Source: Phaeosaccion multiseriatum (Eukaryota > Protista > Ochrophyta, other classes). From it: 64,000 nucleotides of DNA. The first letter of the stretch is position 1. Every line of letters begins with the position of its first letter. A model generated the notes under the pieces. That model was not told where the DNA came from. It saw nothing but the letters and a program-made list of their open reading frames with translations, and made no database searches. The DNA lies in NCBI GenBank assembly GCA_965112735.1, contig OZ218951.1, positions 62,001 through 126,000 of the forward strand, given 5' to 3'. Made by a program: the position numbers and the translations under genes. Positions 740-51,774 of the stretch are shown one piece after another.

Positions 740-3700
740 TCAGGCCCCATAGCTAGTGGGCACCTCCACCTCCACCTCCACTGTCATGGGCGTGGGGAGG
801 ACGGGGTAGACAGGGACGTCCTCTTCGCCGCACACGTTGAGCTCTCCTGCACAAAAACACACACACACACGCAGGGACAGACAGACGAGGGGAGTGAGAG
901 CCTGCAAGGGATGGCGAGGTGAGCGACATTCTCGACAGCCACAGTGGTACTCCGCCTAAGGAGTAGCCCTCTGTCGTAAGCTTCAAGTCACGAACGGTTA
1001 CGTACCTGCAGGGGTGTCGGGGTGCTCCGCGACATACTTTGCCGCGCCCTCCTCCGTGTAGCAAGCTCTGCAATTCTTGCCAGCCTCGAAGATGTCGCAG
1101 TGGCTGGAGGGGAGGGGAGACAAGAGGCCAGTCACAAATGCCAGCGGTGAAGGAGCATGAGGATGAGAACACACAAGGGCAGCAGCGAGAAGAGGGGGTG
1201 AGGAGTGGAGACCTTTTCCCCGCCGTCTTCATGGACGCTATTCAGGGCGCTCTGGCAACCGACTGCACTCCCAGTGACTTAATCACTTCCCCTACTCACA
1301 TTCCGCCGAAGGTGGGGTGTCCAGACGTGCACGTGACGTCACACACGAGGCGCTTGTGGTGCTCGTCAAGATACTTCTGGTCGTCCTCCGTCAGGGGGGC
1401 GCAGCAGGGCTTGGTGGGGGCGGGGGTCATAGGGTAAGGCGTCGGCTTCGGTGTCGGTGCCACTGTAGGAGGCGCTGTCCAGGCCTTGGTGGGGGGCAAG
1501 GTGTCTTCCGGGGTAGGAGGTGCTGTCCATGCCTTGGTTGGGGCGGGCGTCGGATGCGGCGTCGGCTTCGGTGTCGGTGCCACTGTAGGAGGTGCTGTCC
1601 AGGCCTTGGTGGGGGGCAAGGTGTCTTCCGGGGTAGGAGGTGCTGTCCAGGCCTTGGTTGGGGCGGGCGTCGGATGCGGCGTCGGCTTCGGTGTCGGTGC
1701 CACTGTAGGAGGTGCTGTCCAGGCCTTGGTGGGGGGCAAGGTGTCTTCCGGGATAGGAGGTGCTGTCCAGGCCTTGGTGGGGGCGGGCGTCGGATGCGGC
1801 GTCGGCTTCGGTGTCGGTGCCACTGTAGGAGGTGCTGTCCAGGCCTTGGTGGGGGGCAAGGTGTCTTCCGGGGTAGGAGGTGCTGTCCAGGCCTTGGTTG
1901 GGGCGGGCGTCGGATGCGGCGTCGGCTTCGGTGTCGGTGCCACTGTAGGAGGTGCTGTCCAGGCCTTGGTGGGGGGCAAGGTGTCTTCCGGGGTAGGAGG
2001 TGCTGTCCAGGCCTTGGTTGGGGCGGGCGTCGGATGCGGCGTCGGCTTCGGTGTCGGCGCCACTGTAGGAGGTGCTGTCCAGGCCTTGGTGGGGGGCAAG
2101 GTGTCTTCCGGGGTAGGAGGTGCTGTCCAGGCCTTGGTGGGGGCGGGCGTCGGATGCGGCGTCGGCTTCGGTGTCGGTGCCACTGTAGGAGGTGCAGTCC
2201 AGGCCTTGGTGGGGGGCAAGGTGTCTTCCGGGGTAGGAGGTGCTGTCCAGGCCTTGGTGGGGGCGGGCGTCGGATGCGGCGTCGGCTTTGGCGTCGGTGC
2301 CACTGTAGGAGGTGCTGTCCAGGCCTTGGTGGGGGGCAAGGTGTCTTCCGGGGTAGGAGGTGCTGTCCAGGCCTTGGTTGGGGCGGGCGTCGGATGCGGC
2401 GTCGGCTTCGGTGTCGGCGCCACTGTAGGAGGTGCTGTCCAGGCCTTGGTGGGGGGCAAGGTGTCTTCCGGGGTAGGAGGTGCTGTCCAGGCCTTGGTGG
2501 GGGCGGGCGTCGGATGCGGCGTCGGCTTCGGTGTCGGTGCCACTGTAGGAGGTGCAGTCCAGGCCTTGGTGGGGGGCAAGGTGTCTTCCGGGGTAGGAGG
2601 TGCTGTCCAGGCCTTGGTGGGGGCGGGCGTCGGATGCGGCGTCGGCTTCGGCGTCGGTGCCACTGTAGGAGGTGCTGTCCAGGCCTTGGTGGGGGGCAAG
2701 GTGTCTTCCGGGATAGGAGGTGCTGTCCAGGCCTTGGTGGGGGCGGGCGTCGGATGCGGCGTCGGCTTCGTTGTCGGTGCCACTGTAGGAGGTGCTGTCC
2801 AGGCCTTGGTGGGGGCGGGCGTCGGATGCGGCGTCGGCTTTGGCGTCGGTGCCACTGTAGGAGGTGCTGTCCAGGCCTTGGTGGGGGGCAAGGTGTCTTC
2901 CGGGATAGGAGGTGCGGTCCAGGCCTTGGTGGGGGCGGGCGTCGGATGCGGCGTCGGCTTCGGTGTCGGTGCCACTGTAGGAGGTGCTGTCCAGGCCTTG
3001 GTGGGGGCGGGCGTCGGATGCGGCGTCGGCTTTGGCGTCGGTGCCACTGTAGGAGGTGCTGTCCAGGCCTTGGTGGGGGGCAAGGTGTCTTCCGGGATAG
3101 GAGGTGCGGTCCAGGCCTTGGTGGGGGCGGGCGTCGGATGCGGCGTCGGCTTCGTTGTCGGTGCCACTGTAGGAGGTGCTGTCCAGGCCTTGGTGGGGGC
3201 GGGCGTCGGATGCGGCGTCGGCTTTGGCGTCGGTGCCACTGTAGGAGGTGCTGTCCAGGCCTTGGTGGGGGGCAAGGTGTCTTCCGGGATAGGAGGTGCG
3301 GTCCAGGCCTTGGTGGGGGCGGGCGTCGGATGCGGCGTCGGCTTCGGTGTCGGTGCCACTGTAGGAGGTGCTGTCCAGGCCTTGGTGGGGGCGGGCGTCG
3401 GATGCGGCGTCGGCTTTGGCGTCGGTGCCACTGTAGGAGGTGCTGTCCAGGCCTTGGTGGGGGGCAAGGTGTCTTCCGGGATAGGAGGTGCGGTCCAGGC
3501 CTTGGTGGGGGCGGGCGTCGGATGCGGCGTCGGCTTCGTTGTCGGTGGCACTGTAGGAGGTGCTGTCCAGGCCTTGGTGGGGGCGGGCGTCGGATGCGGC
3601 GTCGGCTTTGGCGTCGGTGCCACTGTAGGAGGTGCTGTCCAGGCCTTGGTGGGGGGCAAGGTGTCTTCCGGGATAGGAGGTGCGGTCCAGGCCTTGGTGG

Positions 3701-6700
3701 GGGCGGGCGTCGGATGCGGCGTCGGCTTCGGTGTCGGTGCCACTGTAGGAGGTGCTGTCCAGGCCTTGGTGGGGGCGGGCGTCGGATGCGGCGTCGGCTT
3801 TGGCGTCGGTGGCACTGTAGGAGGTGCTGTCCAGGCCTTGGTGGGGGCAGGGGTTGGAGGTGGCGTCGGTTTGTCCTCTCCAGGGCACATGATGAGATCA
3901 TCGGAGTAGAGCGAAGGTTTCAGCTCCAGGAAGGTAGCGGCGCCCTCCGTGGTGAAGCAAGAGCGGCAGTTTTTGCCCAATCCGAAGATGTTGCAGTCAC
4001 TGGCAGGCAGACAGGGAGGACGAGGAGGAGAAGAGGGCGAGGAGAACGAGGGTCAGGAATGAGCCACTGGAGAGTCGGTTGAGAAGGTAACCGGGTACCC
4101 CTTCGTGAAAAAGCAATACCCTCTCCTCTGCCTCTGCTACTCACAGTCCGCCGAAGGAGGGGCTCTCTGCCGTGCAGGTCTCGTCACAGAAGATGTCCTT
4201 TCCGAAGGCGTCGAGCTGTCCTCTGTCTGCCTTGCTCAGCTCCGCGCAGCAGGGCTCCGGGGTGGGAGGGGCCGTGGGCTGAGGGAGAGAATACGTTGAA
4301 GCAGGTGGGAAACGGAGAGGAAGGGAAGCAAGGGTCAGCTGCAGGCCAAAATAGAACTCAGCACAGGGGCCATAGACAACACTAAACACTCCTTCAGCTC
4401 CTGAAGCGATGTTGCCACACACCTCAGGGGTGGGCTTCGGCGTCGGTGCCACTGTAGGAGGTGCTGTCCAGGCCTTGGTGGGGGGTAAGGTGTCTTCCGG
4501 GGTAGGAGGTGCTGTCCAGGCCTTGGTGGGGGCGGGCGTCGGATGCGGCGTGGGCTTTGGCGTCGGTGCCACTGTAGGAGGTGCTGTCCAGGCCTTGGTG
4601 GGGGCAGGGGTTGGAGGTGGCGTCGGTTTGTCCTCTCCAGGGCACATGATGAGATCGTCGGAGGAGAGCGAAGGGTTCTGCTCCAGGAAGGTAGCGGCGC
4701 CCTCCGTGGTGAAGCAAGAGCGGCAGTTTTTGCCCAATCCGAAGATGTTGCAGTCACTGGCAGGCAGACAGGGAGGACGAGGAGGAGAAGAGGGCGAGGA
4801 GAACGAGGGTCAGGAATGAGCCACTGGAGAGTCGGTTGAGAAGGTAACCGGGTACCCCTTCGTGAAAAAGCAATACCCTCTCCTCTGCCTCTGCTACTCA
4901 CAGTCCGCCGAAGGAGGGGCTCTCTGCCGTGCAGGTCTCGTCACAGAAGATGTCCTTTCCGAAGGCGTCGAGCTGTCCTCTGTCTGCCTTGCTCAGCTCC
5001 CCGCAGCAGGGCTCCGGGGTGGGAGGGGCCGTGGGCTGAGGGAGAGAATACGTTGAAGCAGGTGGGAAACGGAGAGGAAGGGAAGCAAGGGTCAGCTGCA
5101 GGCGAAAATAGAACTCAGCACAGGGGCCATAGACAACACTAAGCACTCCTTCAGCTCCTGAAGCGATGTTGCCACACACCTCAGGGGTGGGCTTCGGCGT
5201 CGGTACCACTGTAGGAGGTGCTGTCCAGGCCTTGGTGGGGGGCAAGGTGTCTTCCGCGGTAGGAGGTGCTGTCCAGGCCTTGGTGGGGGCGGGCGTCGGC
5301 TTCGGTGTGGGTGCCACTGTAGGAGGTGCTGTCCAGGCCTTGGTGGGGGCGGGCGTCGGATGCGGCGTCGGCTTCGGCGTCGGTGCCACTGTAGGAGGTG
5401 CTGTCCAGGCCTTGGTGGGGGGCAAGGTGTCTTCCGGGGTAGGAGGTGCTGTCCAGGCCTTGGTGGGGGCGGGCGTCGGCTTCGGCGTCGGTGCCACTGT
5501 AGGAGGTGCTGTCCAGGCCTTGGTGGGGGGCAAGGTGTCTTCCGGGGTAGGAGGTGCTGTCCAGGCCTTGGTGGGGGCGGGCGTGGGCATCCCAGTGCAG
5601 ATGTTGAGCTCCGAGGCGGGCGTGTGGGGGAACTCTGGGGAGGAGGTCAACGAGACGGCAGCAGATGGGGCAGTGAAGGCAGCGGAGAGTTAGGCTAAGG
5701 CAGCAAGACCGTACCCAATGGTGGAAGGAGTTGGTGAGAAGGTGTGAAGTAGGACGTTTCGAAGGACGAGTATGAAGCACGCACGTACCTTGCAAGTAGA
5801 GATCGGCACCCTCGGGAGTGTAGCAGGCCCGGCAGTCCTGGCCTTTGCCCCACATGTTGCAGTGACTGGGAAGGGGAGAGAGAACAGAGAAGGGCAGGGT
5901 AGAGAGAGAGGCATGAGGGAGGAACGCGAGGAAGAAACGAAAACAATGCACTGATCCGATCGATCAAGACGTTGTCACACCGACAGCACACAAGCAGGCA
6001 GCGCTGGACAAGAAAAGGAGGATGGTGCTTACATGCCGGCCGTCGCCAGGGAGCAGGAGGGGTCGCACTCGAGCTTCTTCTTGCGGTCAGAGAGGTCTGG
6101 GTAGGAGGCAGGGGGGGAGAGGTGAGGGGAGCGTGAGGGAGAGCAGGGTGTGGGGCGTTGATATAGCCGTGTCTTGCAATATGGCTACTCGTGTGAGGTC
6201 TCCGGGCCTGTGCCAGACACAAACAGAGGCCCAGCTAAGGGAAGTAGCGGAGGGTTGGAAGTGAAGTGCTCTCTGCCCGGGAGGGACTCACGCAAATGTA
6301 AAAACACTCACATTGGAGATTGGCCTCGGAAATTTCGCCGCAGCAGTCCACTGGAGAGAGCAGAGGGGGCAGGGGAGAGAAGGAGAGAGAGAGCGAGTAA
6401 ACGGCCTTGAGTCAGGGGCGGGTTGGCAACGCAGCGTGGTCTTCCTTCGGTCCTTGGGACGGACCCCTGCCGCCCTCAGCCTTGCACAAAGAACCAGTTG
6501 CATTTGGGCAGCAGCGGCAGCGGCACAGCCAGGCCCCCTTTGTTCCCCCCAGTCTCCACCCTCAAGTGTTTCCTGCCTCATTGCTTGCACCGCTCCCTCT
6601 AATCGGCCATATCTCCACTCCAACGGCCACACGCATTTTCCCCGTCCCTCAACTCACATGAGGCATAGTCCGGGTCGTCCCCCGTCGCCTTCAAGGATCT

Positions 6701-6835
6701 CAAGTTGGTCTTGCCCGTCTCCCTGCTGGCATCGCTCTTCTTGTCTCCCTGGTGCAGAGTGCTCCCAAGTCGGGCGCCGTTGGTCTGTTGCAGGGTCAAC
6801 GCTGCTCCCAACAGCAGGAGAGGAAGCCTCGCCAT
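740..6835 (-). CDS. Mucin-like Cys-rich/Pro-Thr repeat secreted protein, copy A (multi-exon; ends at a frameshift stop, no TM anchor)
   Basis: Signal peptide MARLPLLLLGAALTLQQTNGA at 6835. Four FCDxxC...GGx|xCxxxGxGxxCRxC[YF]T-type domains separated by PTKAWTAPP repeats, with canonical GT-AG junctions. A 4-bp insertion near 751-754 gives TGA at 740-742. Confidence 0.8.
1410..3870 (-). repeat. Coding minisatellite: 120-bp (40 aa) and 192-bp (64 aa) units of TKAWTAPPT(V/P/I)...PTPKPTPHPTPAP in one ~2.7 kb exon
   Basis: Strict 120-bp period from ~1440 to ~2760, then 72+120-bp higher-order units. Confidence 0.95.
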
Positions 6836-7475
6836 GCTCTCTCCAAACGGCTGCGAGAACCGCGCTAGGTACTTCCAGGTAGTGCTGTCAGAAAGGGGGA
6901 GGGGTGAGGTGAGGATCTCTCTCTAGTATCTTGGTTGTCCGTTGTGCCTGAGAAAGATACTTTGTGTGTGAAAGGAATGTTGAGGAATGGCCTCTCGCAG
7001 CAGACTGTTGGCCGTTGGTGATTTTTCAATAGCTTGATCTCCTCGGCACATCAATTAGTAACGGACAATTTGAAATAGGATAAAGAGGTGTATGGGTTAG
7101 GATAAGTGCTTGCTGCTGCTGCAGACAAGAGGGCTCCGGTGGCCAGGAATAAGGCCACCGCCCACGAGCAGGTGCGTAGTGCGCAGCCGGGTTATGAGGC
7201 AGAGGAGGGGAGTAGGGGGAGAGGAAAGGTGGGCGAGGCAGGAGGGGCAGTAGGGAGTGAGGAAGGAAGAGAGGGGAGGGAGAAGGACGAGACAGGGAGA
7301 GGGAATTATGCCCGCTGAATCACTTAGACAGCGCGGTCTCACTGGTGGGCCACCGCACGAGTAGGCCTTCCATTGCCTAGCCTCAACGCGAATAGCCTGA
7401 CTGACCCCCACGTGTCGCAACCTCCGGCCTAGCCTGACGCCAAGTGTGGCAACCCCTGCTGGCCTTTGGCTGCAG

Positions 7476-7765: not shown

Positions 7766-8218
7766 ACACGCAGGAGGTGCTGGCGGAGGGGAAGGATTTA
7801 GCGATGGAGGCGGAGAGGGCCCGTCTGGAGAGCATTCGAAACGACCCCGTCAGAGAGGGCTACTACGTGCGGGTGAGGACACCCGAAACCTGTGATATAC
7901 CTGCCTGTCTGTCTGCCTATCTGTACGTATGTCGGCATGCCTGCCTTGCACACTCAGTGCTTGTCCCAGCCTCTGTCTGCATGTGCCTACCTGCCTATGA
8001 CTTGTGCCTGCCCGCCTCCCTCTCTGCCTGTCCATGTGCCTGCCTGCCTGCTTCCCTCTCTGCCTGCCCATATTCCTGCCACAGCGCATGGCTCTGGCGG
8101 GCCTTGCTGTGCTTGCAGTGTGCGCCGTGTACGCCTTCCGAGATGACCTCGGAGAGAGCTTCGACGCCGTGGGGAGAAAGAAGGCCGGAGCCACGTGGAC
8201 TGCCCCGGAAGGGGGCAA

Positions 8219-8252
<34 letters not shown>

Positions 8253-8282
8253 GGTAGTGACGGCAGCAAGAAGGAGAAGTGA
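7476..8282 (+). pseudogene. 5'-truncated three-exon remnant (7476-7544, 7774-7872, 8085-8282) of a gene encoding a protein with a C-terminal TM segment
   Basis: Phase-0 GT-AG exons splice to VRIDVLAELGEDASEADRLHRER|EVLAEGKDLAMEAERARLESIRNDPVREGYYVR|RMALAGLAVLAVCAVYAFRDDLGES...KKEK*. No start exon in the duplicated unit. Confidence 0.65.
7696..7763. repeat. (CA)n microsatellite
   Basis: About 30 CA units seen directly. Confidence 0.95.
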
Positions 8283-8387
8283 CAGGCAAAGACACTGAGT
8301 AGACTAGGCGTGATGTGTGAGCATAACAAACGATTCATATTACAGTTGAAGTCAACATAGGCGCTGCTGTGCTGCTGCCGCCCTTAC

Positions 8388-8772
8388 CTACCCTACTGTC
8401 GAGGATGCTAGAAAAAGGTGTTCACCTCCCTCCTCTGTCCTCCTTATGCTATGCTACGCAAAGTGCTTCATCGTACTCACTAACCCTACTGTCGAGGATG
8501 CTAGAAAGAAGGGTGTTCACCTCCCTCCTCTGTCCTCCTTATGCTATGCTACGCAAAGTGCTTCATCGTACTCTCTAACCCTACTGTCGAGGATACGAGA
8601 TGGAAGGGTGTTCCCCTCCCTCCTCTGTCCTCCTTGTGCTATACTACACAGAGCGCTTGCTATCGCACTCTCTAACCCCACTGTCGAGGATGCTAGAAAG
8701 AAGGGTGTTCCCCTCCCTCCTCTGTCCTCCTTGTGCTATGCTACACAGAGCGCTTGCTATCGCACTCTCTAA
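8388..8772. repeat. ~95-bp minisatellite, 4 copies, between convergent 3' ends
   Basis: Units start at ~8391, ~8484, ~8580 and ~8677. Confidence 0.9.
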
Positions 8773-8948
8773 GGCGCTACCAAGGCCGTCCTGCCCGGCC
8801 TGTTTGTCTTCCAATCACTCTCCCTTTCTTGTGTACACAGGCGGCGCTCCTTCGCGCTCCCGCCTTCCTTCCAATCGAGTCTCTCTGAGAAAGGGACTCT
8901 CGCACGCGTGGGTACGTAAGGCCTGCTCCTTGGCTCAGGGCCTCAGTT

Positions 8949-11900
8949 TCAGTTGGCTTCCATCTGCCCCTGAACTTCCGCGTTGACATCAGCCTCCCCC
9001 TGCCCCGCCGACTTGGTGCGAGCGTTGTTTACTGCGAGCAGGGCCGCCACCAACACGACGCCCGCCACAACGATGCCGGCAATGGCCCCGTCAGAGAGGC
9101 GACGCTTGCCCCCACCTGAGGAGCTGCCGCTGCGGCTCGTGGTCTCCTCCGTGCCGATCTTGCGAGTGCCGTCGGAGTTGCGGAGGCTGTTTCGGTTTCG
9201 GAGTTTCGGAGGAGGGGAGGGAAGCAGAGAAACAGAGGTGGTACGCAGTTAGAGGACTAGCTACTTAAGGAGGGAGGGCTCGTGCAGGTGGCAATAACGG
9301 GGGCAGAGGGAGTGGCCGGCGTGTGACTGACCTGGAGGTGGCCACGAGACAAGCCTGCTCGCCCTCGCACATGTTGACTTCCGCACAGTCTTCGGTGGGA
9401 TTCACGCTCAGGTGCATCCGCGCGCCCTCGGCAGTGTCTGAGAGGGCAGCAGGGGAGGGTAGAGGGGGTGTGTGAGTGGTGCGGTAAGGAGGCCGCCGTG
9501 CCCCCGTAAGTCAGTGCTTCGCAGCGCTCTCTCTACTCACAGCATCCGCGGCAGTTACGACCCAAGCCGAACAGGTCACAGTGCACTCCCCCGTGGCTGG
9601 TGCCCTCCTCAGAGCAGGAGGGGTCGCAGAACAGTTCCTTCCCGTTGACACGGAGGAACTCCTCGTCCGCAGAGCTCAGGCGGGAGGAGCAGTCTGCAGC
9701 GGTGGTGCAGCCACCCGAGGGGATGTCATCGGAGCCCTGTGGAGGGAGGGGGGGCAGACGCAGAGGAGGGCGGAGGGGTAAGAGGTGGAAAGGCAAGACC
9801 AGCGGGCATTTCATAGAATAATGGATGTGTGTGTGACTACAAGGCCGCAACGTACCGTCTCAGTCTCAGTGGACGCATCATCGGCGGAGGCCCCATCCGG
9901 AGCAGCGGATGCCAAGTCGTCGCCAGCGCCCCAAGTGGATGAAGAGGACGAGGGGCTCTCCGTCACTAAAGTGATTGTGTTCGTGTTGTCATGTCCGATG
10001 GGCGGGGGCGTCACCACAGAGAGGTCCGGCGCGGTAGTGTCCGCGGCCTGTACGCACGGGCAGGAGGAACGCACAATGAAAAGGGGTGGGGCGGAGAGAC
10101 AGAGAGGGGGGTAGATGCAGCCGTAAGCCGTAAGCATCAACAGCCTAATGCACCTCCAGCAACCAACAGCCTGGACAAGCATCTCGCCGTACCGTGTGCG
10201 GGTGATCGGCAGAGGGTGCCTCAGCAGAGGGCGCCTCAGGAGAGGGTGCATCTGTCGCGCCATCTCCATGTCCATCGGTGTCCGCTCCTTCGGCGTCCTC
10301 ATCGAGGTCGACGCCCCTGGTGGTCACCGAGTCAAGAGCAGCGTCGGACCCTGGCGCTCCATCTCCTCCCTCTCCCGAGCACTGCTGGCCGGGGCACATG
10401 ATGACGCTTGCGCACGATGATCCCGCATTGGCAGCGAGGTACTTGGCAGAGCCTGTCGAGAGGAGGAGGGCAGTGAGCATTAGGCGCAGAAGGGAGACAA
10501 TTGGGCCGCACTGGGAAGGGAGACTAGCCTAGTCCGACACCAGCTTCAGCTCATGTGGACCGAGCGAGCGAGGGCGATCATCTCGAGCCCGCCTCGCCTC
10601 GCTTCGGTCAAAGGCTCACCTTCCGTACTGTAGCAACCCCTGCACTCCCTTTGGAGGCCGAACATTCCGCACCACAGCCCGTCCAGGGAGGGCTCTTCAT
10701 CGAGGCACGAGGTGTCGCAGAACAGCCCCTTCATCTGCTGCTCGAGCTCCATTGACTGCTCCTCAGTCAGGTGCGTCGTATCGCACACGCAGTCCGCATC
10801 GGGCACCAGGGGGGCGGTAGTAGCCTCAGGCCCCATTGTGGGCACCTCCACCTCCACGGTCACAGGCGCGTTGGTCATAGGGTGCACTGGCATGGCCGTG
10901 ACAGGAGCGGGCGTGGGGAGGACGGGGTAGACAGGGACGTCCTCTTCGCCGCACATGTTGAGCTCTCCTGCACAAAAACACACACACACACACACACACG
11001 CAGGGACAGACAGACGAGGGGAGTGAGAGCCTGCAAGGGATGGCGAGGTGAGCGACATTCTCGACAGCCACAGTGGTACTCCGCCGAAGGAGTAGCCCTC
11101 TGTCGTAAGCTTCAAGTCACGAAAGGTTACGTACCTGCAGGGGTGTCGGGGTGCTCCGCGACATACTTTGCCGCGCCCTCCTCCGTGTAGCAAGCTCTGC
11201 AATTCTTGCCAGCCTCGAAGATGTCGCAGTGGCTGGAGGGGAGGGGAGACGAGAGGCCAGTCACAAATGCCAGCGGTGAAGGAGCATGAGGATGAGAACA
11301 CACAAGGGCAGCAGCGAGAAGAGGGGGTGAGGAGTGGAGACCTCTTCCCCGCCGTCGTCAAGGGGACGCTATTCAGGGCGCTCTGGCCACCGACTGCACT
11401 CCCAGTGACTTAATCACTTCCCCTACTCACATTCCGCCGAAGGTGGGGTGTCCAGACGTGCACGTGACGTCACACACGAGGAGCTTGTGGCGCTCGTCAA
11501 GATACTTCTGGTCGTCCTCCGTCAGGGGAGCGCAGCAGGGCTTCGTGGGGGCGGGGGTCATAGGGTAAGGCGTCGGCTTCGGTGTCGGTGCCACTGTAGG
11601 AGGTGCTGTCCAGGCCTTGGTTGGGGCGGGCGTCGGATGCGGCGTCGGCTTCGGCGTCGGTGCCACTGTAGGAGGCGCTGTCCAGGCCTTGGTGGGGGGC
11701 AAGGTGTCTTCCGGGGTAGGAGGTGCTGTCCAGGCCTTGGTGGGGGCGGGCGTCGGGTGTGGCGTTGGCTTCGGCGTCGGCTTCGGTGTCGGTGCCACTG
11801 TAGGAGGTGCTGTCCAGGCCTTGGTGGGGGCGGGCGTCGGGTGTGGCGTTGGCTTCGGCGTCGGCTTCGGTGTCGGTGCCACTGTAGGAGGTGCTGTCCT

Positions 11901-40982: not shown

Positions 40983-41870
40983 TCTCCTTCTCTGTGGGAC
41001 AGCCAAGGCCCTCCGATCCGAGCTCAGCGAGCAGGACAAGGAAGCCGATGGGGAAGAACAGCGAACGAAGCAAGGGGCAATCAAGAGCCGATCGTAAGTG
41101 CGTCATTTCCTTTTCGTATTGGGGGGAATGTTGTCCTCACACCGGTATCCCTCACCCCTTCTTTGTTTTGCTCCTTCTCTGTGGGACTGGATGAGACAGC
41201 CAAGGCCCTCAGATCCGAGCTCAGCGAGCAGGACAAGGAAGCCGATGGGGAAGAACAGCGAACGAAGCAAGGGGCAATCAAGAGCCGATCGTAAGTGCGT
41301 CATTTCCTTTTCTTTGGTTCGCCTCACCCCTTCTCTCTCTGTTTTGGATTTGTTTTGGAGGCACTCCTTTTTTGCTTACAAATTCCCCTTCTCCTCCCTT
41401 CTCCTGGCTGCCTACACACTTCCCCTATGCTGCAGGCGCGAATTGCCGAGCAAGTGGTTGAAGGCGTGATGGTAAAACATCAGCGGGCTCGACTCATCGC
41501 TTTCCCTCCCTCGCTGATGATAATGCTAATGGATGAGAGCGATCTGGAAGGGAAGGGAGTGCAGATACGGGGAAGCGTGAGGTTGCTGAAAGACTGTGGG
41601 CTGGACATTGATGCATTGATGTGAGACGAGGAGGAGAAGAAAACTTGGGCTATGATGAGGATTTTTGTATCAAAATTGGTGGGAAGACTACGCTGACCGA
41701 AGCTGCATTAAATGGGCACTTCGATTTGGTGCGGGGGCTCCTGGAGGAGGGTGCAGATGTGGACAAGGGTGATTGGCTTGGCTCTGTTTTCGACCTATCG
41801 GAGGAAGGAGGGTGGGGAAGTCACCCCATGATCCTATCGTACCTGTTGGGGAGTAGGGCCAGGATCAGCA
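40983..41870 (+). pseudogene. Ankyrin-repeat pseudogene with a duplicated exon and an 8-bp frameshifting duplication
   Basis: GKTTLTEAALNGHFDLVRGLLEEGADVDKG; ~130-bp direct duplication (40983-41115 and 41171-41312); CATTGATG tandem duplication at 41606-41621. Confidence 0.7.
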
Positions 41871-42017
41871 GGTGGCAGAGGCGGAGGGGGTGGTGGAGGT
41901 GGTGGAGGTGGCGAGCGAGGCCGGTGTGGTGGCAGCAGAGGAGGCGCTCGCGGCAGGTTTGGAGGCTGCGAGTTTCAGTGCTGTGGCCGGCTCACAGCGA
42001 CACACAAACAGCGACAA

Positions 42018-42072
<55 letters not shown>

Positions 42073-42425
42073 TGGCAGAGGCGGAGGGGGTGGTGGAGGT
42101 GGCGAGCGAGGCCGGTGTGGTGGCAGCGGAGGAGGCGGCGAGCGAGGCCGGTTTGGCGGCTGTGCCTTTCCGTGTGATGGCCGGAGCGGAGTGCGAGGGG
42201 GCGGCGCTGTTGCCGCTCCCGCAGCCGCAGTCGCCGGTGGCAGAGGCGGAGGGTGGTGGTGGAGGTGGTGGAGGTGGTGAGCGGGGACGGGGTGGTGGCA
42301 GCGGAGGAGGTGCTCTCGGCGGCGGCGGCGCCGATGGCCGCGTTGGAGGCTGTGCGTTTCAGGGTGGTGTGTGGGTTAAGCTATATTAAACACGTACCAG
42401 TAGCTCACAAAAGACCATTTACATA

Positions 42426-45149
42426 CTACCCTTTGCTCTGCTGGCCACCACCCCCTCCCTGTTGGAGCGCTATTCTTCTGCTTCGCTTCTTGGGGGCACC
42501 CCCCTCTGGTGGAAGAGGAGCGCGACGTTTGCGCCAGCATCCCTCCTTCTGCTGCTGCTCGCCCATCCTCTTCTTTCCCCTCGTGTTGGGGCCGGGGTGT
42601 TTGGGGGTACGAACGGGGGGGTCTGCGTCCGAGTTTGGTCCATCATCTCCTCTGAGACGAGCCCGCTCCTCACGTGGCTCATGCGCCTCTCCCGCGACGC
42701 CTCCCCGCTCCTCAATGGTCTGTGTGCCTTTCTGCCTATCCCCCTTGTGCTGCTTGCCTCCCCCGTGCCTCCTGCAGAATCCGACCCCCCCACGTGAACT
42801 TTGCTGTATCTTGGTGCATCCCTGCTTGCTGCAGAGCTTATACCCTCCCCCGTGTCTTTTGCACAATCCCCGTATCTCGGGTCTGTTGGGGCAGCCCTTC
42901 TCTCTACAGGTCTTTCCCCCGTGCTTGTAACACTTGTCGTCCCCTTTTGTGGGTTCTCTCCGGCACCCCTGCTCGCTACAGCGCCTCCCTCCACCGTGAC
43001 TGTGGCACAATCCCCGTGCCGAAGGTTTGTTGGGGCAGCCCTTCTCTTTGCAGGTCTCTCCCCCGTGCTTGTAACACTTGTCTCCCTTTGTGGGTCTTGT
43101 GGTACACCCCTGCTCGGTGCAACCCTTCCCTCCACCGTGTGGCTCATGCGCCTCTCCCGCGACGCCTCCCCGCTCCTCAATGGTCTGTGTGCCTTTCTGC
43201 CTATCCCCCTTGTGCTGCTTGCCTCCCCTGTGCATCTTGCAGAATCCCCCACATGCATATTGCTGTGTCTTGGTGCATCCCTGCTTGCTGCAGAGCTTAT
43301 ACCCTCTCCCGTGACTCTTGCACAATCCCCGTCCTATGGGTCTGTTGGCGCAGCCGTTCTCTTTGCAGGTCTCTCCACGGTGCTGGTGACACTTGTCTCC
43401 CTTTGTGGGTCTTGTGGTACACCCCTGCTCGGTGCAACGCTTCCCTCCACCGTGACTCTTGCAGAATCCCCGTGCCTCGGGTCTGCTGGGGCAGCCGTTC
43501 TCTTTGCAGGTCTCTCCCCCGTGCTTGTGACACTTGTCTCCCTTTGTGGGTCTTGTGGTACACCCCTGCTCGGTGCAACGCTTCCCTCCACCGTGACTCT
43601 TGCAGAATCCGACCCCCCCACCTTGCTGTATCTTGGTGCATCCCTGCTTGCTGCAGAGCTTATACCCTCCGTGACTCTTGCACAATCCCCGTGCCCTCGG
43701 TCTGCTGGGGCAGCCCTCCTGTCTACACGTCTCCGGTGCCTTTGTAAGCGGCGTGAATCGCTCCCTGGCCTCCTCCTCGGTGCAACCCTGCTCGAACATG
43801 ATGCGCCCTGCAAGCATGTCGTTCAACTGAGCATATGTGTAGTTGCCTGCAAAAAGGGGGGGGGTGGGGGGGGGGAAGGAGGAGGAGGAGGAGGAGGAGG
43901 AGGAGGAGGAGGAGGAGGAGGAGGAGCGTCAGAAAAAGCCCCTTTGACAAGTAGCGAAGCACCCATCCCCGCCAACGACACGTACCACATATGGCGAGGG
44001 TGCTGGGGTGCATGAGAGCGCCCATCCTTAGCCCTGCATAGTCAGCGTCTGGATCTTTCCCTTGAGCAAACTGCCCTTGGGCGCATTCTCCCGTGATGAG
44101 GAGCAACGGGAGGAGTGGGAGGCACCATCTCAATTTGCCCGCCGAGACATAGCACCATGGTCTCCCATCATCCGTGGAAGTATTGGTAAAAACGGGAGCC
44201 TGCCTTCTGCCGGCGTTCCAGCGCCCCGCGAGCATGACACCAATTGCCTCTTGGTGATGTACAGTTCGATTGTCCCCCGAAGCGACTGCCCCAACCATTG
44301 CGGAGTCCAGTTTCAGGATCATCGTGCCCATGACCTTGACACCCGGCTGTTTGAGCTGATCGGCTCTGGGCGTCGAATCAAGAATCATCATGTTCGCCCC
44401 CGTTCGGACCCCAGTCTTTTTACCCAAAGAGGCCATCGTGCCATCGTCGAGGCCCCAGTCAGTGCGCTCGCCCGCGACCGGCTTGTCATAATGAACGAGG
44501 TGGACAACAATGATCTTGGCATCTTGCTCAGGTTGCCCCTCCTCTGGTGCTGGGTCTTTAAAGATGGGCTGAAACCACGGCTCTACATGTTCAAGCCAAT
44601 GCTTCACCTTGGCCTGGTACTCGGGACTGCTGACGAATCGATAGGCGGCTGTTACCTTGCACTGATCATCCATACAGAACCATCCGCTCCGGCTGTCAAT
44701 GACCTGTTGCACGAATGGCGGAGGGTAGTATCGCACGCTCATAGCACCCACTTTCCTCTCCCCATCTGGTTTGGAGGGCCGGTCTCGTAGGGGATGGGCC
44801 CTCTCATCTTTCGCGTTCATGACAGCCTCCAGTGGTCGAATTTCCCGCCGGATAGACTGCCTCCCCCCGAACTCCGTCAAAACCCCCGCCCCTTGCAACA
44901 TGTTCTTTGTCTGTGTGCCCTGCGGATGAAGAGAGGGAGATGGGTGAGAGGAAGACTCTACCGCGGTCGAAGAAAAGCGCCACCGCCCCTCCTCCCTCCC
45001 TCCGACCGACTACATGTGCACTTGCTGCTCACCTCGTTTGCGGATGTGCCATGCCGTTGCGTGCCTTGTACTGGCACCGCTGGCACCGCCTCCTTCTCCT
45101 CCTCCTCCTCCTCCTCCTCCTCCTCCTCCTCCTCCTCCTCCTCCTCCTC

Positions 45150-45183
<34 letters not shown>

Positions 45184-45191
45184 TCCTCCAT
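42426..45191 (-). CDS. Acidic N-terminus, UDG-superfamily-like domain, 12 tandem C-x4-C-x9/13-C-x2-H (WRKY19-like) zinc fingers and a basic NLS
   Basis: Exons 45191-45033, 44919-43986 and 43846-42426 splice in frame. Twelve C..C..C..H units such as CKEKGCPNKPSARGLCHSH; C-terminal RKRR...PKKRSRR. The UDG-like call is motif-based only, and the start may lie further upstream. Confidence 0.75.
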
Positions 45192-47830: not shown

Positions 47831-48296
47831 TTAATGGGGGAACTGCCTCCTCGACAACAACGGATTTGCATGGGCTGCAGGGGGCGGTAGGGGGAACTTC
47901 CACTTCCGCACCGGTCTGATCGTGTAATCCTGTCGTAAAGCCGTCACGGCCTTCGTGAACTCCACGGCCCTCTTCTCCTTCTTGAGTTCCTCAATCTCTC
48001 TGAACACCTGATGCCTTTGCGTCGGCTCCCCCGCTTCGGTTCCGGCCTCAAGCGCAGCCCTGACGCAACCCAGAAGGCTCTTTGCACGACCGTCGTCTTT
48101 GAATTTGATGGAGGCATTCTGTCCCACCGCCGCCTCCCACCGGGTAAGCGTTTTTTGCCTTTTGGGGCAGGTGATGAACTCGAGGGCGAATGTCCAGAGA
48201 AGCGAAATGTGGTCCGTGGTTGGGCTTGGACTTTCCACCGTCATCAGCAGCTTCCTCTTCTTCTTCGGTCTTTGCGCCGAGTCCTCGCAGGTGCCG

Positions 48297-48332
<36 letters not shown>

Positions 48333-51300
48333 CGTGCCACTCCCTCCGGTGTAGTGCAGGCGCTGCTGCTGCTGCTGCCACGTGCCACTCCCTCCGGTGT
48401 AGTGTGGGCGCTGCTGCTGCTGCTGCTGCTGCTGCCAAATGCCACTCCCTCCGGTGTAGTGCAGGCGCTGCTGCTGCTGCTGCCACGTGCCACTCCCTCC
48501 GGTGTAGTGCAGGCGCTGCTGCTGCTACTGCTACTGCTAGCCCCTCCATGCACTAGCAGAGAGGGAGGCATCCCCGCCTGTAGCAGCTGCTCCTGGGTGG
48601 AGGGCGCCCTGCCCGCCCTGACGACACTGAGGACCTCTCCGAGGAGGGCCTTCACATCACTCAGCTCCCCTCTCGCCTCCCCCAGTTGCTGTGTCAGGGT
48701 GGCGATGGCCTGCCCCTGCTGATAGTTCTTCTGGTGCAAGTCGCGGACGGTATTGCCGATGTTGAAAACCCCGTCTCTGATGGCCGACTGGTGGAGATCT
48801 GGCCCTCTGCTCCCGGCCGGCTGCGCTTGACTCAATTGAACTGCAAGTGCGGAGTTGCTCTGGATAATGTTCCGCACGACTGGCTCAACGGCTTCGGCGA
48901 CGCCAACACTGAGCCTTTCGGCAGTGGCGCCAAACTTCTGCTGTCGCTTCCTCGCGTATTCTTTCACTTGTATGCTCCATTGCTTCCAGGCCTCGGTCTT
49001 GAAGAGTTCGGCGTCCCACAGCTGCTGGAAGGACTGCCACTTCGGGTCGTCTTGCAGGAGCACCAGGTTCTGAAGGAGGGCAGTGCGGACTTCAACCATG
49101 GCGGCGAGGTGGAGAACACGGTCTTGCTTGGACGAGCGAGTGTCCATCTTCCTCCACTCCTGCTCGTTCTCCAGCCACTCTTGGATGTGAGGGAGGCAGT
49201 GCTGGTACAGGGTCCTCACATGGTCAGCAGACACAAGCTCCTCTGGTAGTGCATGGAAATGTGCAGCCCAGTACGCCTGCACTTGCTTGAAGAAGGCGCA
49301 GAACTTGACCGGGCCCCACTCGGTCTTCATGTAGAACTGCTTCATTCTACTCAGGCCCACCGCCCACGCATGCCGTTCGAAAGCATCGGACTGCTCGCTG
49401 CTGAGCGTGCCACTCGCGGAGTTGGTAGCGGTCTCCGAACACGAGGTGGCGAGATAGGTGCTTGATTCTCACATTGCCTGTAGCAGTCCTGCTGACCAGG
49501 CCGATCGCCTCTGCCGCCTTTTGGATGTGAGCTGACAGACATGCGGACGAGATTGCGAACGCAGGTAGCATCTGCCACTCTCGTGCATTTGACGCCTGGT
49601 AGTCTGGGGTAGGATAGCCACGTATTCCCAGGTGGTGGCGCGCGAAAAGAAGCAGCCCTGTGACGACATGTTTTTAGGCGCAGCGCGGAGCGGACAGAGG
49701 GGCAATAGAGTGACGGAGCGAGGCAGGGAGAGAGGGTGTGAGACACAGGGAGAAAGGATAAAAACACACACAGGCGCACACGCACACACATTGGAAGTCG
49801 AGCTACTGCAGGGGAAGACAGGCAAAGCGTCACAGCCGTACGTACATGTGAGCCGCACCGTCGACCACTCCCCCCCTCTGTCCCTCAAAATCCTCCCCTG
49901 CCCTCCAGTCCCTGCGCTTTCCCCTGCGCCTCGGAAAGCGTAGGCACTCACCATACATGCCAACAGCATCCATCCCAGGCTTTGCGGCGCGGACGTAGAC
50001 CTGGCGAGCATGAGCCTCCGACGTCTTGCTGCTCAGCACCACGCGCTCCATAAACGCATTTATGCCAGTCCCGAGTTCTGCTGTCTCACCCTTGAACAGC
50101 GCGCCCGTCAAGCGGTTGAACACCTGCTCCATTCGACTTGCGGTTGCGAGCGTCTCGAGTACGATAACGAGCGCTTCCAGGCGCTCCAGGTATGCATCCG
50201 TTGGCTGATTGTCGAGCCCCTTGCTCGCTTCAAAAACGCGTTCGGTCAACGCTTCGATGAGGCGCTCCGCGTCCTCCGGGTTGGTTGGGCTGGACGCAGA
50301 CGCTGCACCCTTAGCGAGGTCGTCCCTGCAACGCAGTGGACGAGCGGAGGGGTGGCACGGGAAGGGCGAGGATGCGTCGAGGACGACATGAGGATACACC
50401 AGAATGAGAAGAGTCGGGGTGCAGGAGACTTCACCCTCCCCGCCCACCCCCCATACCCCCCATACATAGACGAGGCGAGTTCATACATACTGACTTGTTC
50501 TTGTACACGGCAGCGTTGCGATTCCGTTGGAGGCTCTTTCTCGTCGAGGCCAGGTCGGAGTTGGCCTTCGAATGCACCCAGGCGTCTGGGCTTCCAGGCA
50601 TCGGCATCTCACGATTGATGATGCGCTGGACTTCGCAGATCTTGGTAGTGACTGCCCCTGCCGGCTGTTCGCTCGTCTTGCCCACCTCCGTTTTTCTTCT
50701 TGGGTCCGTCCTCGTGCACTCCGCCAAGTAAAAGGCGAGAGCCACTTCGTTGGTCAACCAGCAGGACAAACCCTCCTTTCGCCGATCAGTAACGAAGGCC
50801 ATGAAGCGAGGCAAGGAGGCGTGCATTTGACGCTGCACAGACTTGCCCAACTCTAACCACAAACCCCTTTTCCGACTCAACGAGTCCTGCCCGGCAAGAA
50901 AAAAAACAAACAAAAATGTGTGAGGTGTAAGGACGCAGCAATGTTCCCTCCCTCCGCCTTCTCCTGTGCTCTGCCTTACCTCCATGTTTTTGGTGTCTTG
51001 CGGGCTTGGTGTGAATGCCGTGCACCCCCAACCTTTGGTGCGATGAGTTTTCATGACCTTCACCAGGTCTTCGAAAAGCCGCTCAGTCTTCTGTTTGTCT
51101 TCTTTCGTCGCTTGGCTGTTCGTTATCGGCGTCGCCGCCTTCCCCTTCGACGCCGCCCGTGAACGCTTCTTACTTTTCGCACCAGTACTTTCCGCAGCAG
51201 CACTGCGTTTGCGCGTCGTAGGAGGAGCGCTTGCGCTTGAAGTGGTTGAAGGTGAGTCCGTCCCTGCCTGACGACCCGCAGTAGACACGGCGTCTGGAGC

Positions 51301-51453
51301 TGCGGCCGCCGCCGCGGTGTGAGCAGCGCTGTGAATAGCATCGTTCATACCCTCCAAACCCGGGTCAGAATGGGTACCTGCCAGAGCCCCACCCAGGGTG
51401 CCTGTGTCGCCGCTGCTGCCACCTGCGGCGTCAGAGGCGGCTTCGCGTGACAT
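47831..51453 (-). CDS. Crypton/Ndc10-type tyrosine recombinase (4 exons; one +1 frameshift at ~49438) with a GCR1_C-like C-terminal domain
   Basis: Exons 51453-50980, 50886-50495, 50325-49952 and 49657-47831. Catalytic-order motifs TASRME (R), SSKT (K), KHLSRH (HxxR), RHAW (H/W) and MKQFY (Y). Crypton-like blocks DAVGMYGLLLFARH...PDY...W and VRTALLQNLVLL...LFKTEAWKQW. Confidence 0.82.
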
Positions 51454-51774
51454 GGCACTGGACACAAACAAAGTCGAGACAGGAAGGGCAAGCAGCACCG
51501 ACAGAATAAGAGTTAGAGAAGGACGGGAGCCATTGTCAAAGCCAGGGCAGAGTGAGAGCAAGGGAGGCACACTTGCTCACGTTTTCAGAGCTTCAAAGAA
51601 GGGTTAGAAGCCAGACAACAGGTAGGGAGAGGAGGGAGGGAGGGAAGGAGGGAAGGAGGAAGGGAGGAAGAGAAGAAGGAAGGGCGGGAGGGGGGAAGGG
51701 AGAGAGGGAGGAAGGGCGGGACGGGAGAGAGGAAGAAAAGGGTGTGGCGGAAGGGAGGAGGGTGGGAGAAGAGC

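Follow-up and report, generated by a model that had tools for sequence, protein, structure and literature searches.

A predicted Zf_WRKY19 finger-array protein of Phaeosaccion multiseriatum with an orphan N-terminal module

A 64,000-nucleotide stretch of the genome of the ochrophyte Phaeosaccion multiseriatum (GenBank assembly GCA_965112735.1, contig OZ218951.1, positions 62,001 to 126,000 of the forward strand; the whole stretch is referred to below as the window) carries a predicted three-exon gene in which an N-terminal module of about 350 residues is spliced in frame to an array of 12 Cys3His zinc fingers and a basic tail that resembles a nuclear localization signal (NLS). The array type, Zf_WRKY19, is known; what appears to be new is the orphan N-terminal module attached to it. 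Together with two paralogues the gene most likely represents a small lineage-specific family of nuclear proteins, and there is judged to be about an even chance that it is an intact spliced nuclear gene for a regulatory or recruiting member of this three-member family, built of module, 12-finger array and NLS-like tail. The original prediction, made before any database search, had taken the module to be a divergent domain of the uracil-DNA glycosylase (UDG) superfamily. Its description of a module-array fusion and of the novelty of the module stands, whereas the UDG assignment is not supported.

In the proposed scheme the protein would be located in the nucleus, where the strongly basic finger array would bring it to particular nucleic-acid sequences and the orphan module would act as the effector. 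The effector role would lean toward regulation or the recruiting of partners, as with the KRAB or SCAN domains found on C2H2 arrays, rather than toward a base-excision enzyme, since none of the catalytic signatures holds up once the paralogues are compared.

Gene structure and predicted exons

The window is part of contig 2 of a 67-Mb assembly in 22 contigs and has a GC content of about 57-68% in 2-kb steps. The gene lies on the minus strand as a spliced model of three predicted exons (Table 1), and the model was searched exon by exon, each separately. The minus-strand translation of 44919-43987 is free of stops for 311 codons, with a GC content by codon position of 0.62/0.46/0.64; both the bounds of exon 2 in the original prediction, 44919-43986, and its in-frame GT..AG splice to the finger exon are present in the sequence. 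The predicted donor is G/GTACGT at 43985 (a slash marks the exon boundary) and the acceptor, TTGCAG/, ends at 43847. A Gly codon is split by this second intron (G + GC) and the frame is maintained into exon 3, which runs from 43846 to 42426 on the minus strand with the stop codon at 42426-42428. The N-terminal module comprises exon 2 and the first ~35-39 residues of exon 3. A candidate exon 1, of isoelectric point (pI) 4.05, ends at a phase 0 donor (GAG/GTGAGC) and joins exon 2 across the first intron; a paralogue also has a low-complexity open frame upstream of its module exon that ends at a phase-0 donor.

Table 1. Predicted features of the gene in window coordinates
Feature	Position	Strand	Description
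Candidate exon 1	45033..45191	-	ATG, then a low-complexity poly-Glu stretch; 53 codons; read from the sequence
Intron 1	44920..45032	-	113 nucleotides; its 3' part, 44929-45000, is a conserved element
Exon 2	43986..44919	-	311 codons and 1 base; bulk of the orphan N-terminal module
Intron 2	43847..43985	-	139 nucleotides, GTACGT...TTGCAG, phase 1; contains (CCT)n and poly-C
Linker (start of exon 3)	43728..43846	-	Acidic, ~39 residues, ends EEARERFTP; part of the N-terminal module
Fingers 1-7 (Zf_WRKY19)	43221..43727	-	C-x4-C-x9-14-C-x2-H; PF24906, E 4.7e-20; regular-expression count
Non-finger spacer	43122..43220	-	33 residues, KQHKGDRQKGTQTIEERGGVAGEAHEP...; copy of the start of the C-terminal tail
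Fingers 8-12 (Zf_WRKY19)	42756..43121	-	Pfam, regular-expression count, tandem repeats
Basic C-terminal tail	42426..42755	-	pI 10.7; NLS-like clusters; stop codon

The zinc finger array

The fingers of exon 3 are assigned by profile to the Zf_WRKY19 (PF24906) type: the Pfam model matches the array in 6 stretches at 71.5 bits against a cut-off of 27. A regular-expression count of the repeated unit gives exactly 12, in three recurring sub-types and broken once by the non-finger spacer; the 12-finger Cys3His array and the NLS-like basic tail of the original prediction are thus both confirmed, the clusters in the tail being KKRMGEQQQKEGCWRKRR (KKR...WRKRR) and PKKRSRR. The array has a pI of 9.6. 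It grew by recent tandem duplication, with a 456-bp unit in 2.0 copies (88% match) and a 141-bp unit in 2.2 copies (93% match); the spacer is 97% identical to 42674-42782 and falls within the 456-bp duplication.

A word-based search with exon 3 finds 1122 homologous proteins at E<=1e-5, most of them oomycete or plant proteins, with identities of 30-50% across the array. The best is a Pythium protein (E 1.6e-50) and the top ranks are held by oomycetes (Pythium, Achlya, Phytophthora, Albugo and Aphanomyces), followed by one labyrinthulid and then by a conserved angiosperm set of about 630 residues. Nearly all of these homologues have PF24906 alone, and "WRKY19-like zinc finger domain-containing protein" is the name given to many of them. 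A finger alignment of 61 sequences shows no variation in any Cys or His column, and an AlphaFold2 model of fingers 1-5 reaches a predicted local distance difference test (pLDDT) score of 87.9. In the host genome a first look gives at least 909 finger candidates, with large clusters on contigs 1 and 13, and all 150 of the candidates that were scored (150/150) lie above the cut-off.

The paralogues and the module-array pairing

Two paralogues of the module are found in the genome, on contigs 12 and 9 (E 3e-36 and 1e-35, 34-35% identity); they are 96-99% identical to each other and both align over all 311 residues without stops or frameshifts. A profile search of the 67-Mb genome at E<=10 yields no further copy, for a total of three. 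The two paralogues are contained in a segment of about 10 kb that is duplicated between contigs 12 and 9, likewise at 96-99% identity (L004:4782-10000 and L006:1-4342 against L005:3179-10000 and L007:1-4354); the segment holds the paralogue gene, tandem repeats of 72 bp and 345-366 bp, and a eukaryotic aspartyl protease (PF00026, E 4.8e-59).

The paralogue module exon ends at a phase 1 donor, CAG/GTGGGT, and the next exon begins after gcaag/ and completes a Gly codon, as in the window. This next exon is a mini-exon of about 39 residues that ends AEARERVTP, and the start of exon 3 in the window, up to EEARERFTP, matches it in BLASTP at 40% identity over 25 residues (E 7e-5). A linker EARER[FV]TP is common to all copies; in the window a single open frame runs through it and finger 1. 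This match indicates that the position and phase of intron 2 are conserved and that the module runs ~35-39 residues past the intron; the predicted splice is thus supported by the paralogues. Beyond the mini-exon the paralogue is predicted to splice in frame to a Gln/Glu-rich, coiled-coil-like exon, and downstream on the same strand a frame (L004:6883-8133:-) encodes 10 Zf_WRKY19 fingers (E 3.8e-33) with KRAR and KKKPR basic clusters. Since both lineages retain module and array despite 66% divergence, the pairing would appear to be ancestral and functional. The original description of a modular array joined to an N-terminal module without fingers therefore holds: it is borne out by the open frame, by the in-frame splice and by the intron and linker kept by the paralogues.

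Conservation and relatives of the module

The most conserved block of the three-copy alignment is formed by residues 198-235 (window 44215-44328), in which T-M-I-L, V-G-A-V-A, G-D-x-R-x-x-H-H and G-x-M-L-x-G-x-W-N are invariant. Past residue 235 the invariant positions include W-C, a second Cys, T-G-E, G-Q and G-L-R-M-G. Among the invariant residues are D181, D216, H221, H222, W234, N235, C256, C266 and E278.

The module appears to be a lineage-restricted orphan without detectable relatives beyond this genome. Neither the window module nor a paralogue matches Pfam at E<=10, and PADLOC, NCBIfam and PHROGs give nothing, or chance-level rows at E 0.1 or worse. Against 177,635 PDB sequences at E<=10, neither phmmer nor a three-sequence profile finds a relative. 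In a protein atlas the best feature score is 0.78, and the paralogue has no usable match. A word search with the module, covering proteins of 171-544 residues, finds no relative, and with the three-sequence profile no match reaches E<=0.001 in a set of 1.84 billion representatives that stand for about 15 billion proteins; scans of JGI metagenome contigs and IMG/VR viral contigs with back-translated patterns likewise show no module relatives. Since the E-value threshold of a database-wide search could hide weak matches, the 120 best finger proteins were searched locally by hmmsearch with filters off. All of their module scores are negative, which indicates that the other Zf_WRKY19 proteins carry no diverged copy of the module. 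The earlier statement that no described protein of this architecture was known is borne out by the word, profile, metagenome and viral searches, as far as the N-terminal module is concerned.

Relation to the uracil-DNA glycosylases

The UDG assignment was drawn from four peptide strings, AKIIVVHL (residues 134-141, window 44497-44520), ANMMILDSTPR (175-185, 44365-44397), IGVMLAGRWNA (226-236, 44212-44244) and ALMHPSTL (301-308, 43996-44019), all of which do occur in the claimed order in one open minus-strand frame of exon 2. The likeness to the superfamily (PF03167; families 1-6) lies in the HPS near the C-terminal end of the module and in a loosely similar order of hydrophobic, strand-like segments before it, and attachment to an array that probably targets DNA would be in keeping with a DNA enzyme. 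In addition, the AlphaFold2 model of the module (pLDDT 29) is too poor for its fold to be judged against that of the UDGs, which is alpha/beta/alpha with a parallel sheet of four strands. It might thus be supposed that the module is a very divergent UDG fold that acts on modified bases, as reader or remover, wherever the fingers place it.

The sequence comparisons lend such a fold no support. PF03167 does not match the window module or a paralogue at E<=1 or E<=10, and a six-frame scan of the whole genome, this gene included, yields no match at E<=0.01, whereas the same model matched in 13 of 14 control genomes. There is no UDG among the PDB matches obtained for the module with phmmer and the three-sequence profile. 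Alignment by hhalign of the family profile with E. coli Ung, a single-sequence target, gives a probability of 0.15% over 15 columns that lie off any motif, lower than the 0.35% of an unrelated E. coli control. The profile half of the check set by the original prediction, run with Pfam UDG, the PDB profile and hhalign, therefore gives no UDG-like match.

The motifs themselves fare no better. The segment proposed as motif A, AKIIVVHLVHYDKP, has no Gly-x-x-Pro loop such as the G-Q-D-P-Y, G-E-x-P-G or G-I-N-P-G that follows strand 1 in the superfamily, and K135 and V142 are its only residues shared by all three copies; the string itself, with neither Gly nor Pro, keeps only K135. The HPS loop, said to be kept and corresponding to motif B of the type H/N-P-S, is HPS in the window but RPS in a Gly-rich context in both paralogues (GGGMRPSSKGQPGG), so that the His is not conserved. 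Only HPS fits the UDG template in register, and the N...P and G..A strings are off the template spacing. From the supposed motif A to HPS the module measures about 165 residues, as compared to about 110-125 residues in Ung and in family 4. HPS alone arises in 2.6% of shuffles of the protein and is present in 6 of the 72 window open frames of at least 200 residues. The motif series is weak evidence for UDG. In sum, the N-terminal module is not recognisable as a UDG superfamily member, and the divergent-glycosylase explanation is held to be very improbable indeed.

Possible regulatory or catalytic role

Several points weigh against reading the gene as an intact one for a regulatory or recruiting nuclear protein. 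Four public sequencing runs hold the locus, all from one sample and study and of unrecorded kind, and the splice joints are not seen in them; their contigs cover both introns, as those of genomic DNA would, so that both splices and exon 1 stay models. In the paralogues the stretch between module and array contains several predicted exons together with 366-bp tandem repeats of the start of the Gln/Glu-rich exon. For the pair of young duplicates the ratio of nonsynonymous to synonymous substitution rates (dN/dS) comes to 0.78, from only 18 substitutions, a value that does not demonstrate constraint. With respect to the fingers, the Zf_WRKY19 family is not known to bind nucleic acid, the AlphaFold2 finger model has no PDB fold match by Foldseek or VIA-align, and a literature search for "WRKY19-like zinc finger" returned no papers under that name. 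With respect to the module, AlphaFold2 with only three sequences in the alignment yields a mean pLDDT of 29.4 and a predicted template modelling (pTM) score of 0.22, values that leave some probability of an enzyme, or even of a glycosylase fold that has diverged very far; and the invariant D181, D216, H221, H222, C256 and C266 would suit a metal-dependent enzyme too.

The first of these points bear on whether the fusion arises only from the gene model, with module and array in fact belonging to two genes or with the locus being a duplicate that is not transcribed or is in decay. To the absence of splice joints from the public runs and the dN/dS of the young paralogues may be added that the tail is common to the gene and a transposon (see below), and that finger arrays are so common in this genome that some adjacency to them is expected. 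Nevertheless, the linker that forms a separate mini-exon in the paralogues is in the finger frame in the window, the position and phase of the intron are conserved, the 311-codon frames are intact in three of three copies despite 66% divergence, and in both lineages the array lies downstream on the same strand; a modelling artefact of this kind therefore has only a slim chance of being the explanation.

The points on the module bear on whether it is an enzyme of an unrecognised kind, such as a metal-dependent nuclease or hydrolase or a modifier of DNA or chromatin, delivered to specific sequences by the array, which would make the protein a natural programmable enzyme. Features that would fit are the invariant G-D-x-R-x-x-H-H of residues 198-235 followed by W234-N235, the invariance of D181, C256, C266 and E278 at 34% overall identity, a length of about 350 residues, and the mixture of alpha and beta elements in the model of low confidence (pLDDT 29). 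However, the module has no profile or structure-sequence match to any enzyme family, motifs picked out by eye are either not conserved in the paralogues or are missing essential parts, and conserved polar residues at such divergence are not specific for catalysis. An enzyme of this sort is considered a serious though less likely alternative. Less likely still is the narrower proposal of a module with a new fold, or of an enzyme diverged beyond recognition, that would cut or modify DNA or chromatin and be delivered by the array as one of several array-effector combinations.

Specific catalytic signatures were tried and rejected. For a deaminase (HxE...PCxxC), the paralogues have His in place of the Glu, and the two Cys are spaced by x9. 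For PD-(D/E)xK there is no conserved acidic-x-Lys, the Lys being Arg in the paralogues. An HNH assignment would need a second conserved His and flanking Cys pairs, neither of which is present, and a beta-class N6/N4 methyltransferase (DPPY and motif I) finds no Gly-rich loop and no Pfam match.

Links to mobile DNA

The tail and spacer of the gene (42530-42771 and 43138-43238) match, at a DNA identity of 80-87%, a segment from the interior of a repeated element of about 5.1 kb, which has 61-bp terminal inverted repeats and is present in at least four copies on contigs 2, 3 and 11. Those examined are L014:3078-8194, L015:3351-8474 and L013:2930-7946, and the contig 11 and contig 3 copies are 96% alike. 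The tail-homologous open frame of the element is L015:3811-4263:-. It thus appears that the NLS-like tail is common to the gene and to a transposon-borne open frame, and transfer may have been in either direction. As judged by eye, the 5.1-kb element also holds a copia-like C-terminal fragment.

A second shared sequence is the conserved 3' part of intron 1, an element of ~60-70 bp (CGACCGCGGTAGAGTCTTYCTCTCACCCA...CGCAG) that ends intron 1 in all three family members. Its DNA identity to the paralogue copy (L002:2440-2510) is ~80% at a place where the coding DNA no longer aligns, and the two paralogue copies differ by a 2-bp insertion. On contig 6 it occurs as an inward-facing inverted pair around a palindromic centre (988479-988692; L011:4880-5093), and no genome copies are found beyond the family members and this pair. 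An intron-encoded small nucleolar RNA was tried as the reason for the conservation of the element and rejected, Rfam giving nothing significant.

The original prediction had offered mobile-element cargo as one role for the protein, and the gene might accordingly be transposon-derived or part of a mobile element, as a domesticated or cargo gene, instead of an ordinary host regulator. The identity of tail and spacer to a piece of an element with terminal inverted repeats would fit this, as would the resemblance of the contig 6 pair to a miniature inverted-repeat transposable element, and Zf_WRKY19 arrays cross-match a Cys cluster associated with KDZ transposases, e.g. PF18721 (the CxC6 cluster) in an array on contig 13. 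On the other hand, the module has just three copies in 67 Mb, two of them close copies inside the segmental duplication with a host aspartyl protease gene, the transposon copies carry neither module nor fingers, and a second, inverted copy of the intron 1 element is not found in the window. Mobile-element cargo is therefore improbable, and a host gene of regulatory or recruiting character is preferred.

Other array genes and neighbouring frames

Arrays of the same type are combined in this genome with different accessory domains. In a segment of contig 13 (3144500-3154499; L016) minus-strand tandem genes at 546-2351, 3184-4614, 5656-6861 and 7918-9348 begin with a Zf_WRKY19 array that varies in length and end in a conserved non-finger region of about 170 residues; this C-terminal region has no Pfam match and differs from the accessory module considered here.

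Two long open frames upstream of the gene in the window, 47831-49360 and 50431-51570, both on the minus strand, have no Pfam match at E<=10. The convergent downstream neighbour, 41621-42280 on the plus strand, matches ankyrin repeats weakly (E 0.0014), and beyond this match come repeats of low complexity rich in Gly/Ala/Trp/Arg.

Relation to known systems and significance

With the WRKY19-like proteins (PF24906) of oomycetes, labyrinthulids and land plants the predicted protein shares tandem units of ~24 residues with the pattern C-x4-C-x~10-C-x2-H-G-G; it differs from them in that the 120 best homologues have nothing like the N-terminal module outside their fingers. A likeness in how the protein may work, not in membership, is to the KRAB-C2H2 proteins and PRDM9, which also join an N-terminal non-finger module to a long tandem array, in which the array likewise grows by tandem duplication (here the 456-bp and 141-bp repeats), and whose finger family is likewise greatly expanded and clustered in the genome. 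The differences are that the Cys3His Zf_WRKY19 finger fold is unrelated to C2H2, that the module is unrelated to KRAB, SCAN or SET, and that DNA binding is here only putative.

As found, the module is a lineage-specific orphan domain, and the proposed tie to DNA glycosylases is not upheld by the tests. Plants and stramenopiles commonly have Zf_WRKY19 arrays, for which no ligand or function is known. In a genome with hundreds of such arrays, a conserved orphan module provides a handle on what the arrays are for; should the module prove to have an activity, the array would probably serve to target it.

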